Source of the DNA: Paramicrosporidium saccamoebae KSL3
Lineage: Eukaryota; Fungi; Cryptomycota
Length of the DNA stretch: 6,382 nt
Direction: 5' to 3'
Assembly: GCA_002794465.1 (NCBI GenBank)
Contig: MTSL01000158.1
Span: 1-6,382, forward strand
The position numbers and the translations under genes were made by a program. Every line of letters begins with the position of its first letter. Position 1 is the first letter of the stretch. The notes below the pieces were generated by a model. The model was not told where the DNA came from. It did no database searches and worked only from the letters and a program-made list of their open reading frames with translations. Shown in pieces: positions 16-4,635 of this stretch.

Positions 16-1519
16 TTAGGAAAGCTTAAGAACTTCAGAGGTGGCATTAAACAAGGCATCAGTGGGCTGTACTGTGATTGCGCCAAAAGGCACCTGCTGG
101 TCGCTGATCACAAGTCCCTTTGTTTGTAGCACGAGTAATTGCAAAAATGAGTCTGCAACTTGCTTCCTGTGCGCAGTGGGAACAAGTTTATCAAATTGAA
201 GGGAATGGGCGCTCCGGAAGGCCTGTTGCCAGATGGCAAGAATGTCAAGGGACTCGTCGCTGAGCGAAAGGCTGGCAGTACGTTGCTTGGTAGGAGAATT
301 AGTGATTGATCGGTTAAAATTGGGGACTGCATTTTCATCATTCATGATGCGAGGAGACTTTGGCGATCGGGGCATGGGAACATCAGCTTCCATGGCAAAG
401 TCGGCGGGGCCAAGGGCATAATCGTCGTCGTTAAGAGGGACCTGCTCTTCAAACTCTAAAGCTGGCTCGATGATAGTTGCAACTTTGGGTCTGGCAGGCG
501 CTTCAATAGATAACAAACAGAGGCTCTCGGCCAGAGAATGGTTATTCCACGATGGCTTGGGTAGGAGGATGGGGGTGGAATCGCGAACACATTCCTGAAT
601 GAAGTTGTTTGACACTTCAATTTCGACATCAAGAGAGACTGGCTTTATGCTACGAGTACGACGGATACGCGCTTGGCGTGTAACGGCCACGGCCGACACT
701 GGAGCCGGCGGAGCCGACAGTCTGTCATTGAAAGGAACTTCAGGCATGGGAGGCTCGTCAAAGTAGCCAAAATCTTCATTCAAGGGCACCTGCTCAAACT
801 CAAAATCGACATTTTTTGTTGGAGTCCTAAGGGGAGAGAAGGGAAGTGAGGGACGAGGAGACTCGGCACGACGACCGGCCTCAATTGACTGTCGGAGGGG
901 GTCGCTCATCAAATTGCCGTCCATTGTAGCGCGGCGACCAAACTCGACGTCCATCTGGAACTCTGAGGGAAGCTCATCTTCCTTAGCAGGACCGAGGCCA
1001 AAGTTGAGATTGGATGCATCATATTCCAGATTTGGCCGTCTCATTGGCTGGGCAGCCATTTTGGTCGGTGCAGTGGCAGTTTCGCGCAGTAGGGCACTAT
1101 ATATGATGAGGATCACGACGAATGGATTACTCTAGATCGAGTTCAGGTTCAGGTGCGAGGGCATCATCAAGATTGGCTACGACGGGCAGGGTGATGGTGG
1201 CATGGGAAGCCTTGCTGGCGTGGGCTGGCAAATCAACATTGCTCGGAGTAAAGGCAAGCTTTAACCGGGAGAGTGCGTCAGCGCAATCCTCAAGTAAATA
1301 TCTCGCCTTGCGGCCGTAGATCTTGCTAACTCCCAGAAGGAGCTGCCCTGAGAGTCGGAGTGCCATCGGCGGCAAGGCCCCGTTGACAATATCGCGGACA
1401 CTTATTTCAATGTTCGTCTGGACAATCTGCGCCTTGGTGAGCCGTCGGTCCCAATGTGCCGCCAGCCAAATGTTTGCTAGTGGACCCTTACGGGTGAGGA
1501 TATTATCGCTGTAGAACAT
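16..1519 (-). CDS. rad21: Cohesin kleisin subunit Rad21/Scc1/Mcd1; exons 1519-1131 and 1096-16, 489 aa
   Basis: N-terminus MFYSDNILTRKGPLANIWLAAHWDRRLTKAQI...MALRLSGQLLLGVSKIY is the Rad21/Rec8 N-terminal domain and is Rad21-like. C-terminus RKQVADSFLQLLVLQTKGLVISDQQVPFGAITV matches the kleisin winged helix. A 34-nt GT-AG intron joins the two ORF-track pieces in frame (..ELDLD-ALLRE..). Confidence 0.95.
1097..1130 (-). other. Spliceosomal intron, 34 nt (rad21)
   Basis: GTAATCCATTCGTCGTGATCCTCATCATATATAG on the minus strand. It carries an in-frame TAA, and its removal restores the reading frame between the N- and C-terminal kleisin domains. Confidence 0.92.
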
Positions 1520-1647: not shown

Positions 1648-1792
1648 GTAGACAAATTTGCAGCTCTCTACGAAGTGCCAAGCCTTTTCGCATGGTACTT
1701 TACTATTTGTCTGCAAGAGTGACGTCCAAGCAACAATGACCCACATCGTCCTGGTGGCTGTGGTGACGGGGCAAGTTGCTTGGCCTACAAAC
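1648..1792 (+). ncRNA. Candidate box H/ACA snoRNA (hairpin-hinge-hairpin-ACA)
   Basis: Hairpin 1 has a 10-bp lower stem (1648-1657/1705-1714), an internal pocket and an 8-bp upper stem (1673-1680/1693-1700). The hinge AGAGTGA at 1716 is an imperfect H box. Hairpin 2 has a perfect 9-bp stem CCAAGCAAC (1726-1734)/GTTGCTTGG (1775-1783) followed by ACA at 1787-1789. Both pockets sit 14-15 nt from their boxes. Folded by eye; the 5' end is uncertain. Confidence 0.6.
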
Positions 1793-2025: not shown

Positions 2026-3922
2026 ATGGATCCGGCTATAGTTGCTTGCGTCGTGGAGAAGCATCTCAAGCTAATTGGTTTGGAGGAAGATGCGGAACGT
2101 GCTGAACAACAAGAGTTTCTTGGTAGTCTCAGCAAGCAACAATTACAACAGCGCGGTGTTGCTATATATGGGCTGCGAATAACAGAACAACGAACTGGAC
2201 TAGTGGGAAAGACGATTGTAGAGTTGGGAACGGGAAGCAACTTGCCGGCACATGTCATAAAAACGGGTGATGTAGTCCAAATCGACCGTCCCAGCAAGAC
2301 TGAAGTTGAGGCCGTGTCAGGGATTGTCAACAGACTGACCGAAAATTTTATTAGCGTCGCGTTCAAGGAGCCGCCAAATATCCCTGATGATGGTCTAAGG
2401 ATTGTTAAGTTGCCGAATGATGTTGCATTCCAACGAATGCGCTATGCCATGACCAATTTAGGAAATTCCAAACAAAGTCGATTGCTTGATGTACTATTTG
2501 GACCAGTCAAAGGGGATGGAAAGCAATTCCCAGACCCAGACACAACGAAGGCGCGGTGGTTTAATCCGCATTTGAATGAGTCTCAAAAAGAGGCAGTCAT
2601 ATCGGCTCTAAATGCGTCGGAACTAAAATTGATCCACGGTCCGCCGGGCACTGGAAAGACTGAAACTTTGATCGAAATTATTAAGCAGCTAGTTACACCG
2701 CGGATATTCAATACCTCTACCAGGAAACGAGTGTTGGTTTGTGGCCCATCCAATCTGTCGGTTGACAATATTGTGGAGAGGCTGGGTCAGATTGACATGG
2801 TTCGTGTTGGACATCCAGCGAGGGTGTTGGAGTCAGTAATCCCGCACACTTTGGACTCCCGATTGGCTACTGGTGATGCAGCAGCACTTGTCAAGGACAT
2901 TCGATTGGAAATTGATACCGCTCTCAAGCAGCTGTCCAAATCAGGAGCAAAGCGGCGTGAAATCTATGCCGAATTAAAAGAGCTTAGGAAAGAGCTGTAT
3001 TCAAGAGAAAAGGGAGCTATTGATAACTTGATCAGCGGGTCTTCTGTCGTACTCTCCACCTTGAACATGGCAGGTAGTAAACTTTTGAAAAATCGCAGGT
3101 TTGACGTGGTCATTATCGACGAAGCTGGCCAAGCATTGGAGGCGGAATGCTGGTTGGCCATGCTGTTGGCTGAAAAGGTAATATTGGCGGGCGATCATTG
3201 CCAACTGCCACCGACCGTCTCTTCACCCAGTGCTGAAAGGGGAGGATTGGCAACTACCCTTTTTGAACGGCTTGTCAGCAGAAATCCCGAAGCCATGTCT
3301 TTGCTGAACACTCAGTATCGAATGAATCACCTGATAATGGACTGGTCCAGCACAGAGTTTTATCACGGAAAATTAATAGCCGATCCTTCGGTGGCTACTC
3401 ATTCCCTGTTCACTGAGCATAATGAATCGGTCCTGAGACTCATTGATACCGTTGGCTTTGACTATCTGGAGGCACAGGTGGACGAAGATCAGTCCAAATA
3501 CAATGAGGGAGAGGCAAAGCTGGTGGTGGAGCATCTTCTCAAACTTGTAACTGGTGGAGTATCACCCAAAAGTATTGCTGTAATTACGCCTTACAATGCC
3601 CAAGTTGGGCTGATTGAAACACTTGTAAGCGAGTGTCATCAAGTGCGCGGAGTGGAGATTGGATCAGGTATATCCCAGTCATGAATTAACTGTCCTAGTC
3701 GATGGCTTTCAGGGAAGGGAAAAGGAAGCCGTAATAATATCTTTTGTCCGATCCAATGATACTGGACAGATTGGGTTTCTTTCCGAAGTGAGACGCACAA
3801 ATGTGGCAATCACCCGTGCTCGAAGACATGTCTGCTTGATTGGCGACAGCGGGACGCTTGAAAAGAACCCATTCTACAATCGACTGGTAAATTTTGTGCT
3901 TGAAGAGCTTATTTTAGATTGA
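2026..3922 (+). CDS. IGHMBP2: Upf1-like SF1B helicase, IGHMBP2/SMUBP-2/Hcs1 type; exons 2026-3667 and 3699-3922, 621 aa
   Basis: Motifs include GPPGTGKT (Walker A), [39 protein letters not shown] (reformed across the intron) and [13 protein letters not shown]. The N-terminal LEEDAERAE helix and 1B barrel are typical of the IGHMBP2/Hcs1 clade. No R3H or AN1 tail. Confidence 0.9.
3668..3698 (+). other. Spliceosomal intron, 31 nt (helicase)
   Basis: GTATATCCCAGTCATGAATTAACTGTCCTAG, with branch-like TTAAC and an in-frame TGA. Removal gives [10 protein letters not shown], the conserved motif V. Confidence 0.95.
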
Positions 3923-4018
3923 ATATTTTATTGAGCATGGTGAAGTGCAGTATCCCGAGCCGTAAGGATTGTGGCAAAGATCCTGTATTCTTTGGCTGTA
4001 AATATATGCTCCCATTCA

Positions 4019-4061
4019 TATAAACGATTAAAGAGGCGTTGGCTTTTCTTCTCTCTCCCTT
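4019..4061 (+). promoter_or_regulatory. TATA box plus pyrimidine (CT) tract upstream of cyclophilin
   Basis: TATAAA at 4019-4024, then a 19-nt pure pyrimidine run CTTTTCTTCTCTCTCCCTT at 4043-4061. This layout is common in fungal promoters of highly expressed genes. Confidence 0.5.
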
Positions 4062-4098
4062 AACATTTATCTGCCGGGGATTTCGAAGTACATTAATA

Positions 4099-4635
4099 AT
4101 GAGCGCCGGGGTTTTTCGACAGTTCCGACACTTTAGCGCTATGAGCAAGCCCCACGTTTTCTTTGATATTACTGCCAACGGCCGTTCCATGGGCCGCATC
4201 GTCTTTGAACTTGAGTCTGGCGTTACCCCCAAGACTGCTGAGAACTTTCGTTCCCTCTGTGTCGGTGACAAGGGAATGACCTACAAGGGAAGCAGCTTCC
4301 ACCGTGTCATTACGCAATTCATGTGTCAGGGTGGTGACTTTACCAACCATAATGGCACTGGTGGTCGCTCCATCTATGGAGAAAAGTTTGCGGATGAGAA
4401 CTTTACCTTGAAGCACACCGAGCCCTACCTGTTGAGCATGGCTAATGCTGGACCCAACACCAACGGCTCCCAGTTCTTCATCACCACTGTCAAGTGCCCG
4501 TGGTTGGACGGAAAGCACGTCGTGTTCGGACGCGTTATTGAGGGACAAGACATTGTCAAGAAGATGGAGGCCTGCGGCTCTGACAGCGGCAAGACTTCCC
4601 AGAAGCTCGTGATTGCCAACTGTGGCCAGCTCTAA
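4099..4635 (+). CDS. cpr1: Cyclophilin A-type peptidyl-prolyl isomerase; 178 aa from ATG 4099 or 164 aa from ATG 4141
   Basis: Signature segments [65 protein letters not shown] and [10 protein letters not shown]. Strong C/G-ending codon bias. The ORF-track start at 4039 is TTG, not ATG. Confidence 0.97.

Follow-up and report, generated by a model that had tools for sequence, protein, structure and literature searches.

In the 6,382-nt window, that is, the whole stretch of DNA that was analysed, the spacer between the Rad21 and helicase genes very probably carries an independently transcribed box H/ACA snoRNA of about 140 nt (positions ~1650-1792, plus strand), the 5' pocket of which is predicted to guide the modification at a uridine in helix 34 of 18S rRNA (Ψ1290 in yeast, Ψ1347 in human). 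The most likely function of the spacer RNA is to direct the conversion of this uridine to pseudouridine. The assignment to the box H/ACA class is supported because the RNA combines a hairpin-hinge-hairpin-tail architecture, the spacing of an ANA-type hinge, the spacing of the ACA box, compensatory changes in the stems, and a match to a known Ψ site. The hallmarks of the class that can be tested in a sequence are thus present, and they are conserved in nine lineages. The transcription from the TATA box, the ends of the RNA, its protein partners and the modification itself are what we infer from these features. An earlier note on this DNA had proposed a box H/ACA-like RNA between rad21 and the helicase, and this proposal is borne out by the nine-lineage conservation, the covariation and the match to a known Ψ site. 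The features of the locus are listed in Table 1.

Table 1. Features of the window that bear on the spacer RNA
Feature	Position	Strand	Remarks
Rad21/Scc1 (cohesin) gene	16-1519	minus	one 34-nt intron
SMUBP-2/HCS1-type superfamily-1 helicase gene	2026 to about 3963	plus	two 31-nt introns
Introns	3668-3698, 3887-3917 (plus); ~1093-1126 (minus)	plus, minus	31, 31 and 34 nt, GT..AG ends; very short, uniform
TATA box TATAAAAT	1621-1628	plus	putative Pol II promoter of the snoRNA; read from the sequence
ACCCTGG motif	1637-1643	plus	between TATA and first stem; 7 of 9 lineages
5' leader GUAGACAAAU	1648-1657	plus	alternative pairing with 1705-1714; 5' strand of the 10-bp stem of the earlier note
P1 5' strand, UGCAG	1659-1663	plus	pairs with 1711-1715
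Pocket 5' strand CUCUCUAC	1664-1671	plus	C1666-C1671 complementary to 18S GUGGAG
P2, upper stem-loop of hairpin 1	1672-1701	plus	6 of 9 pairs changed on both sides among lineages
Pocket 3' strand ACUAUUUGU	1702-1710	plus	A1702-A1705 complementary to 18S UAGU
P1 3' strand, CUGCA	1711-1715	plus	covarying partner of 1659-1663
Hinge box AGAGUG(A)	1716-1722	plus	variant H box (ANANNG, A at position 7), 14 nt past P2
Hairpin 2 basal stem, 5' strand CCAAGCAAC	1726-1734	plus	9 bp with 1775-1783
Hairpin 2 upper stem	1738-1772	plus	lower helix 1738-1742/1768-1772; CAUC/GGUG 1744-1747/1762-1765; apical GUC-CUGGU-GGC 1748-1758; 3-nt bulge 1759-1761
Hairpin 2 basal stem, 3' strand GUUGCUUGG	1775-1783	plus	partner of 1726-1734
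ACA box	1787-1789	plus	3 nt past second stem; predicted mature 3' end 1792
A-rich block AACAAAGTCAA	1803-1813	plus	downstream of ACA; AAUAAA-like in relatives

The locus, its relatives and the flanking elements

The window is an entire metagenomic contig of 6.4 kb from a eukaryote and carries four genes, which encode Rad21/Scc1, an SMUBP-2/HCS1-type helicase, a cyclophilin and ATG16. The Rad21 and helicase genes are divergent, and the 506-nt spacer between them (1520-2025), in which the snoRNA element lies on the helicase strand (plus), is the largest non-coding gap of the window, in agreement with the earlier description of it as the only large one. Among named organisms, the nearest by helicase and Rad21 are chytrids and other early-diverging fungi (48-58% identity); the relatives that are closer than chytrids are metagenome contigs only. 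When both introns were spliced out, the helicase protein aligned end to end to P0003 (60.5%) and to Spizellomyces P0017 (50%). As for the cyclophilin, its Pro_isomerase domain occupies residues 21-176 of the 178-aa protein reading from 4099. At window 4039-4140, the cyclophilin ORF has an N-terminal extension of ~20-40 residues ahead of this domain, and the extension could be an organelle-targeting peptide.

The contigs that encode the closest homologues of the helicase and of Rad21 have the same arrangement of genes (Rad21, spacer, helicase, cyclophilin, ATG16). The element was found at the same spot, between Rad21 and the helicase and on the helicase strand, in nine lineages of one group of uncultured, fungus-like eukaryotes: the window, L014, L002/L003, L004/L005, L006, L007, L015/L016, L008 and L017/L018. 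L014 is the closest relative, with a Rad21 that is 98% identical, and L008 and L017/L018 are more divergent. In the aligned spacers there is a single conserved island, corresponding to ~1637-1800 of the window, with 63-69% identity versus 20-46% in the flanks. No bases of the element are better conserved than the loop strands of hairpin 1: both 17-nt guide blocks show 100% identity in L002, L004 and L014, among them lineages whose helicases are about 60% identical.

A covariance model (R1) was built from the nine lineages. The members of the family scored 95-130 bits with this model and every other fetched sequence scored 10 bits or less; R1 found no additional copy in the window or at any other locus, and L021 had no match. 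A scan of the metagenome collection with a DNA pattern of three conserved blocks gave only three chance matches, in unrelated, bacterial-looking sequence, which scored at most 10 bits with R1.

A different H/ACA RNA, of textbook form, occupies the same Rad21/helicase spacer in the more distant relative L009 (9814-9950; also in L010), where the helicase is 49% identical. It has z = -5.5, an H box of ACAAGA, a pocket-to-ACA spacing of 16 nt and other guide sequences, and it goes unmatched by model R1. This could mean that the guides were exchanged at the locus, or that a snoRNA was acquired independently.

The TATA box that the earlier note had placed upstream of the RNA is present (Table 1). 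A TATA-like element lies upstream of P1, the basal stem of hairpin 1, in at least six lineages, at a distance of 38-40 nt in the window, L014, L002, L008 and L017 and of 48 nt in L015. This near-constant distance is the reason why we regard the gene as standalone: it suggests a Pol II promoter of its own, with a predicted transcription start near 1650. The start at 1648 that had been suggested earlier is reasonable in this light. The RNA would be about 140 nt long, with its mature 3' end predicted at 1792 from the ACA+3 rule. An intronic or 5'-UTR origin of the region was also considered; the verified introns of the window are only 31-34 nt long, and this, together with the near-constant position of the TATA-like element, makes it less likely. 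A scan of the spacer for sigma-70 promoters and terminators gave nothing useful, the model being bacterial and the host eukaryotic.

Between the TATA box and the first stem, the ACCCTGG motif is a candidate for the start-site region or for part of the 5' leader. Its CCTGG recurs as the conserved loop of hairpin 2 (1750-1754). Downstream of the ACA position, an AAUAAA-like A-rich block is found in all lineages, and it may be either a 3'-end or termination signal of the snoRNA or a promoter element of the helicase. The box at the ACA position is only about 30-50 nt from the helicase ATG in L004, L006 and L007, and so the snoRNA and helicase units are packed closely in these three lineages and would have to overlap or share signals. 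In the window, three copies of the motif (A/T)AAAGTC stand between the snoRNA and the ATG of the helicase (1803-1813, ~1884-1892 and ~1903-1911), and L002 has one at the corresponding site; a G-run is seen at ~1833-1852. These motifs and the G-run may be promoter or termination elements of the helicase.

Secondary structure and covariation

The minimum-free-energy fold of 1648-1792 consists of two hairpins, with stems of 10 bp (1648-1657/1705-1714) and 9 bp (1726-1734/1775-1783). As the fold of a single sequence it is weak: z was -2.1, the value was equal on the opposite strand, and 6 of 200 shuffles were as good. That the feature stands above chance is therefore concluded from the comparative evidence, that is, conservation, covariation and the target match, and not from the single-sequence fold.

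The earlier note had described two pocket-bearing hairpins with basal stems of 10 bp and 9 bp. Both stems are in the window's fold of minimum energy, but the former is restricted to the window and L014, its 5' strand not being conserved in the other seven lineages, and hairpin 2 of the window lacks a real pocket. The 10-bp helix had to be given up as the basal stem of the family; the stem that covaries is P1, (U)GCAG/CUGC(A). In the window, the fold with the 10-bp stem has an energy of -23.3 kcal/mol versus -20.2 kcal/mol for the conserved P1 fold, and the 10-bp stem covers part of the pocket. The 10-bp-stem fold is more stable by 3 kcal/mol in the window and L014; in the other seven, it is the conserved fold that has the lowest energy. 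That the predicted lowest-energy fold of the window itself has a different basal stem, lying over part of the pocket, counts against the guide reading, as do the AGAGUG hinge, the 4-bp pairing of the 3' guide arm, the closed hairpin 2, the modest z value and the low Rfam score of the window RNA.

The conserved fold of hairpin 1 is rebuilt from lineage to lineage. P1 has the compensatory variants GCAAC/GUUGC in L015, GCAGU/ACUGC in L007 and GCGAC/GUCGC in L008 and L017. P2 is GUGCCA:UGGUAC in the window, UAUCAGGA:UCCUGAUA in L004 and CGCCA:UGGCG in L015. Between these stems, the pocket is a symmetric 7/7-nt loop in the window, L014, L002, L006, L004 and L015, and L007, L008 and L017 have a comparable open pocket. 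The 5' strand of the pocket is invariant in six lineages; in L008 and L017 it reads CUCCAC, which is a perfect Watson-Crick match to GUGGAG. The 3' strand occurs in the relatives in versions that lengthen the pairing to 18S rRNA, namely ACUAAGGA (8 bp) and ACUAGUU (5 bp).

The stretch 1705-1714 (AUUUGUCUGC) copies yeast 18S 1300-1309 exactly and in the same sense, a segment that is found 10 nt 3' of the target U. Five lineages have this stretch unchanged, and a pairing role can be assigned only to ACUA and CUGC. U1706-U1710 (UUUGU) are invariant in five lineages without pairing to 18S rRNA, and together with the 3' strand of P1 they make up the copy.

The hairpin-hinge-hairpin-tail architecture is found in all nine lineages, and covariation backs its four helices. 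This was counted on a nine-sequence alignment (A3) over the 23 pairs of the four helices. Standard pairs were formed in 93.2% of the cells versus 82.0 ± 1.7% in shuffles; changes on both sides were seen in 13 of the 23 pairs (25 cells), versus 6.6 pairs and 9.2 cells in shuffles; and the covariation score was 0.44 versus 0.22. None of 500 shuffles matched the pairing, double-change or covariation values. When the partners were slid by 1-3 columns, the pairing fell to 33-56% with 0-4 double changes. Covariation in the syntenic regions of relatives, which the earlier note had named as a check, is thus found. As for the strand, about two dozen G:U cells would become A:C if the alignment were read in the opposite direction. 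The RNA is placed on the plus strand because these G:U cells, the order of the boxes and the sense of the antisense elements fit this strand only.

The hinge of the window reads AAGAGUGA in full, and the earlier observation that its box is AGAGUG(A) and not ANANNA is correct. The homologous boxes are AGAGUG in the window, L014, L002 and L015, AGAGUA in L006, AGAUCC in L004, AUAAGG in L007, AGAAUA in L008 and AGAACA in L017. A-N-A is invariant, the canonical ANANNA is found in three lineages (L006, L008 and L017), and an A stands at position 6 or 7 in every sequence. The earlier note had left the choice between a variant H box and a different RNA with an H/ACA fold. The former holds, and the latter is unneeded because the H boxes of L008 and L017 are canonical. 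The distance between P2 and the hinge box is 14 nt in the window (U1701 to A1716) and 13-16 nt among the relatives.

In hairpin 2, L014 keeps the basal stem by a double change, C1727:G1782 to U:A, and adds extra pairs. Double changes in the upper stem affect three of five pairs of the lower helix and one of four pairs of the CAUC helix. The apical module is conserved as CAUC-GUC-CUGGU-GRC-YGU-GRUG, and the middle pair of its 3-bp apical stem is U:G, U:A or C:G according to the lineage. A K-turn or box C reading of GUGAUGA in this hairpin was rejected, since the motif varies (it is GUGGUGA in the window) and GA is missing from the opposite strand.

The ACA box, which the earlier note had put 3 nt after the second stem, is aligned in eight of the nine lineages. 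Its distance from the upper stem of hairpin 2 is 14-16 nt in seven of the nine lineages, or in eight when the UCA of L004 is counted, and 20 nt in L006. In the window there are 14 nt between C1772 and ACA. A spacing of 14-15 nt had been claimed earlier for both pockets; it stands as a distance, with 14 nt to AGA and 14 nt to ACA, and fails as a pocket spacing for hairpin 2, in which there is no real pocket. L004 (9811-9813) and L005 carry UCA at the position of the ACA box; the 16-nt pocket spacing fits UCA, an AUA follows only after another 7 nt, and the sequence was found in two independent sequencing runs.

In the window, hairpin 2 has internal loops of only 2-3 nt and no open pocket. A second pocket is open in L004, L007, L015, L008 and L017, with ..AGCCUA as its 5' strand and RCRU.. 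as its 3' strand, and the ACA position is 15-16 nt away from it. This part of the hairpin has closed into a rod in four lineages (the window, L014, L002 and L006), and the rod of the window is a perfect 9-bp stem. From this distribution, the ancestral RNA was probably a double guide, of which the window's lineage would use the first pocket alone. The substrate pattern implied by the second pocket is RUGU-U-N-UAGGCUGU. Compared with yeast 18S, 25S and 5.8S rRNA, the second pockets of the five lineages gave no match of at least 9 bp. Position 556 of 25S rRNA recurred as a match and was rejected, because it needs a mismatch and sits in a variable region.

The predicted target site in 18S rRNA

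From the strands of the pocket in hairpin 1, the predicted substrate is 5'-UAGU-U-N-GU(A/G)GAG-3'. The match in 18S rRNA is UUAGU-U-G-GUGGAG, which belongs to the helix-34 sequence UUAGUUGGUGGAG, and its unpaired U is the residue of yeast Ψ1290 and human Ψ1347. As judged from its class, the RNA would assemble with Cbf5, Nop10, Nhp2 and Gar1. The 5' hairpin would open the 7/7-nt pocket, and A1702-A1705 of the 3' strand would pair with UAGU while C1666-C1671 of the 5' strand would pair with GUGGAG. The U between the two arms would stay unpaired at the foot of the upper stem, at a distance of 14 nt from the hinge box, and Cbf5 would isomerise it to pseudouridine. The 3' hairpin of the window RNA, a closed rod, is probably only a structural half of the particle that carries the ACA box.

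Two 18S sequences were used for the comparison. One is an environmental eukaryotic 18S fragment on an IMG/VR contig, L019, which scores 534 bits with the Rfam model SSU_rRNA_eukarya. The end of this contig, which is classed as viral, is the 3' half of a eukaryotic 18S gene (3780-4543) with an insertion in a variable region, and the contig is probably mis-binned or chimeric. The other is a yeast sequence that was entered by hand, as were those of 25S and 5.8S rRNA (1800, 3396 and 158 nt, respectively). As checks of this yeast 18S sequence, each of the 14 known Ψ positions carries a U, and L019 has an identical target region. The target site in it is position 1290. The target region in the organism's own 18S rRNA was assumed to be identical, because this yeast 18S, human fragments and L019 agree.

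Every guide variant of hairpin 1 picks one single site in the 18S fragment of L019, CGUUCUUAGU[U]GGUGGAG. The pairing at this site is 4+6 bp for the window type (10 bp in total), 8+6 for L007 (14), 5+6 for L015 (11) and 5+7 for both L008 and L017 (12 each). The site is the unique best one in 18S rRNA for these guides, and they have no match of at least 9 bp in yeast 25S and 5.8S rRNA. At the known Ψ sites of yeast 18S rRNA, shuffled guides paired as well as the real ones in 14 of 2000 cases for the window and in 0 of 2000 for L017; anywhere in 18S rRNA, they did so in 4 of 2000 for L007 and in 14 of 2000 for L017. Taken alone, the guide of the window is less telling: its 3' arm pairs over only 4 bp, and 10 bp somewhere in 18S rRNA are common, being reached in 297 of 2000 shuffles (15%). 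What makes the case for the target is therefore that independent variants converge on one known Ψ site.

This site is modified in both yeast and human. Yeast Ψ1290 lies in helix 34, 10 nt 3' of ac4C1280, and its guide is snR83 (PMC5699541, PMC5464676). Human Ψ1347 is 98% modified; its context is UΨG, and ac4C1337 is 10 nt to its 5' side (PMC6182160 and its supplement). In a published comparison table, snR83/18S-U1290 is given as the equivalent of ACA4/18S-U1347 (PMC3542256).

Alternative readings and known guides of the same site

Three other readings of the conserved element were weighed. The RNA might have the H/ACA fold while its main job lies elsewhere, either as a chaperone in the folding or processing of pre-rRNA or, with an snRNA as its target, as a Cajal-body (sca) RNA; snR30/U17 and snR10 do act partly as such chaperones. 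The invariant yet unpaired U1706-U1710, the 18S copy in 1705-1714 that adjoins the target, the apical module of hairpin 2, which is conserved without a known role, and the non-canonical H box would all suit this reading. It is nevertheless improbable, because the bases conserved in the deepest comparisons are exactly the guide arms that pair with 18S rRNA, and the changes in the relatives improve or keep the pairing to the same U. By eye, the loops have neither motifs like m1/m2 of snR30 nor a CAB box (UGAG). Moreover, a chaperone role would add to guiding and would not replace it. A more novel reading is that the RNA is a relaxed H/ACA variant, with a hinge of ANANN(N)A, a pocketless 3' hairpin with the conserved apical module CAUC-GUC-CUGGU-GRC and its 3-nt bulge, and pocket bases that copy 18S rRNA without pairing, and has a second, non-guide function. 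We consider this unlikely, though not negligible. If it were true, the second function might be to aid the folding of helix 34/35, to coordinate with the nearby guide of ac4C acetylation, or to offer a lineage-specific protein-binding site.

It is also conceivable that the island acts at the level of DNA or mRNA, as a promoter module shared by Rad21 and the helicase or as a structured 5' UTR of the helicase. The site is indeed the spacer of a divergent promoter, the element is on the helicase strand, and the short gap to the ATG in L004, L006 and L007 would be in keeping with overlapping units or shared signals. However, transcription-factor sites do not evolve by paired compensatory substitutions over four helices, and a promoter model gives no reason to expect an H-type box and an ACA at canonical distances together with a two-part antisense to a known Ψ site; we therefore hold this reading to be very improbable. 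That the two hairpins are a functionless product of chance, in a spacer of balanced AT/GC content, might be suspected from the modest z value and its equality on the opposite strand. This idea is effectively refuted by the nine-lineage conservation, the covariation and the target match, and the random matches to the three-block pattern remain far below the family in their R1 scores (10 bits at most versus 95-130); we give it hardly any weight.

With the guide reading preferred, the finding would add a bounded non-coding gene to the otherwise protein-only annotation of an early-diverging fungus-like eukaryote. It would mean that the helix-34 pseudouridine (Ψ1290/Ψ1347) and a dedicated guide persist in this lineage. 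The family, which lies below the Rfam threshold, now has an alignment of nine lineages and a covariance model. The family can also be regarded as a small natural experiment, in which the guide pocket is frozen or drifts with the pairing to the same U kept or extended, the second pocket is zipped into a stem, and the sixth position of the H box is tolerant. The current understanding of this class is not challenged by this snoRNA family.

The earlier note had named an Rfam search as a check. At permissive thresholds, the window and the eight relatives gave only sub-threshold matches to SNORA4 (RF00394), with 27.7 bits for the window (E = 0.53) and 30.8 bits for L014 (E = 0.63). The match runs from pocket to pocket, and its scores are about half the gathering score of 56. 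Only the guide hairpin is aligned: the 3' guide hairpin of the model is laid over hairpin 1 of the window, with AGAGU on ACAUU of the model. ARAGORN found no tRNA or tmRNA.

SNORA4 (ACA4) of human guides the same 18S position, Ψ1347 (PMC3542256). Its pocket consensus, CUCcAC/ACUAUuU, is nearly identical to CUCUAC/ACUAUUU in the window; that is, it is the same guide, which explains the weak match. However, the SNORA4 pocket is in the 3' hairpin and is followed by ACA, whereas that of the window is in the 5' hairpin and is followed by the hinge box. In addition, SNORA4 is processed from an intron of EIF4A2, and the window RNA is intergenic with its own TATA-like element. Beyond the pocket, no similarity between the two RNAs was detectable. 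Membership of the window RNA in the Rfam family SNORA4 was therefore rejected on three grounds, namely a score of half the gathering value, the location of the guide in the opposite hairpin, and a genomic context that differs.

The equivalent site in Saccharomyces cerevisiae, 18S Ψ1290 in helix 34, is guided by snR83 (RUF3). Like the RNA proposed here, snR83 is an independently transcribed fungal H/ACA snoRNA, and it is about twice as long as the window RNA. It also guides 18S Ψ1415. The hairpin-2 pockets of L004, L007, L015, L008 and L017 gave no bipartite pairing of at least 8 bp at 18S 1415 and none of at least 9 bp in 25S rRNA. A double guide of the snR83 type (Ψ1290 and Ψ1415) was rejected, since the window has no second pocket and the pockets of the relatives miss Ψ1415. 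No Rfam match of the snR83 type was found in the window and the eight relatives.

Outside fungi and animals, ACA-Eh-SSU1315 of Entamoeba and Pfa ACA 40 of Plasmodium are listed as guides of the same SSU position (PMC3542256); these lineages are unrelated, and the comparison covers the listed target position. Thus, both the site and a dedicated H/ACA guide for it are widespread among eukaryotes. The window RNA is, as its pocket predicts, the functional counterpart of snR83 and ACA4/SNORA4, and would be an ordinary kind of gene whose family falls below the Rfam threshold.
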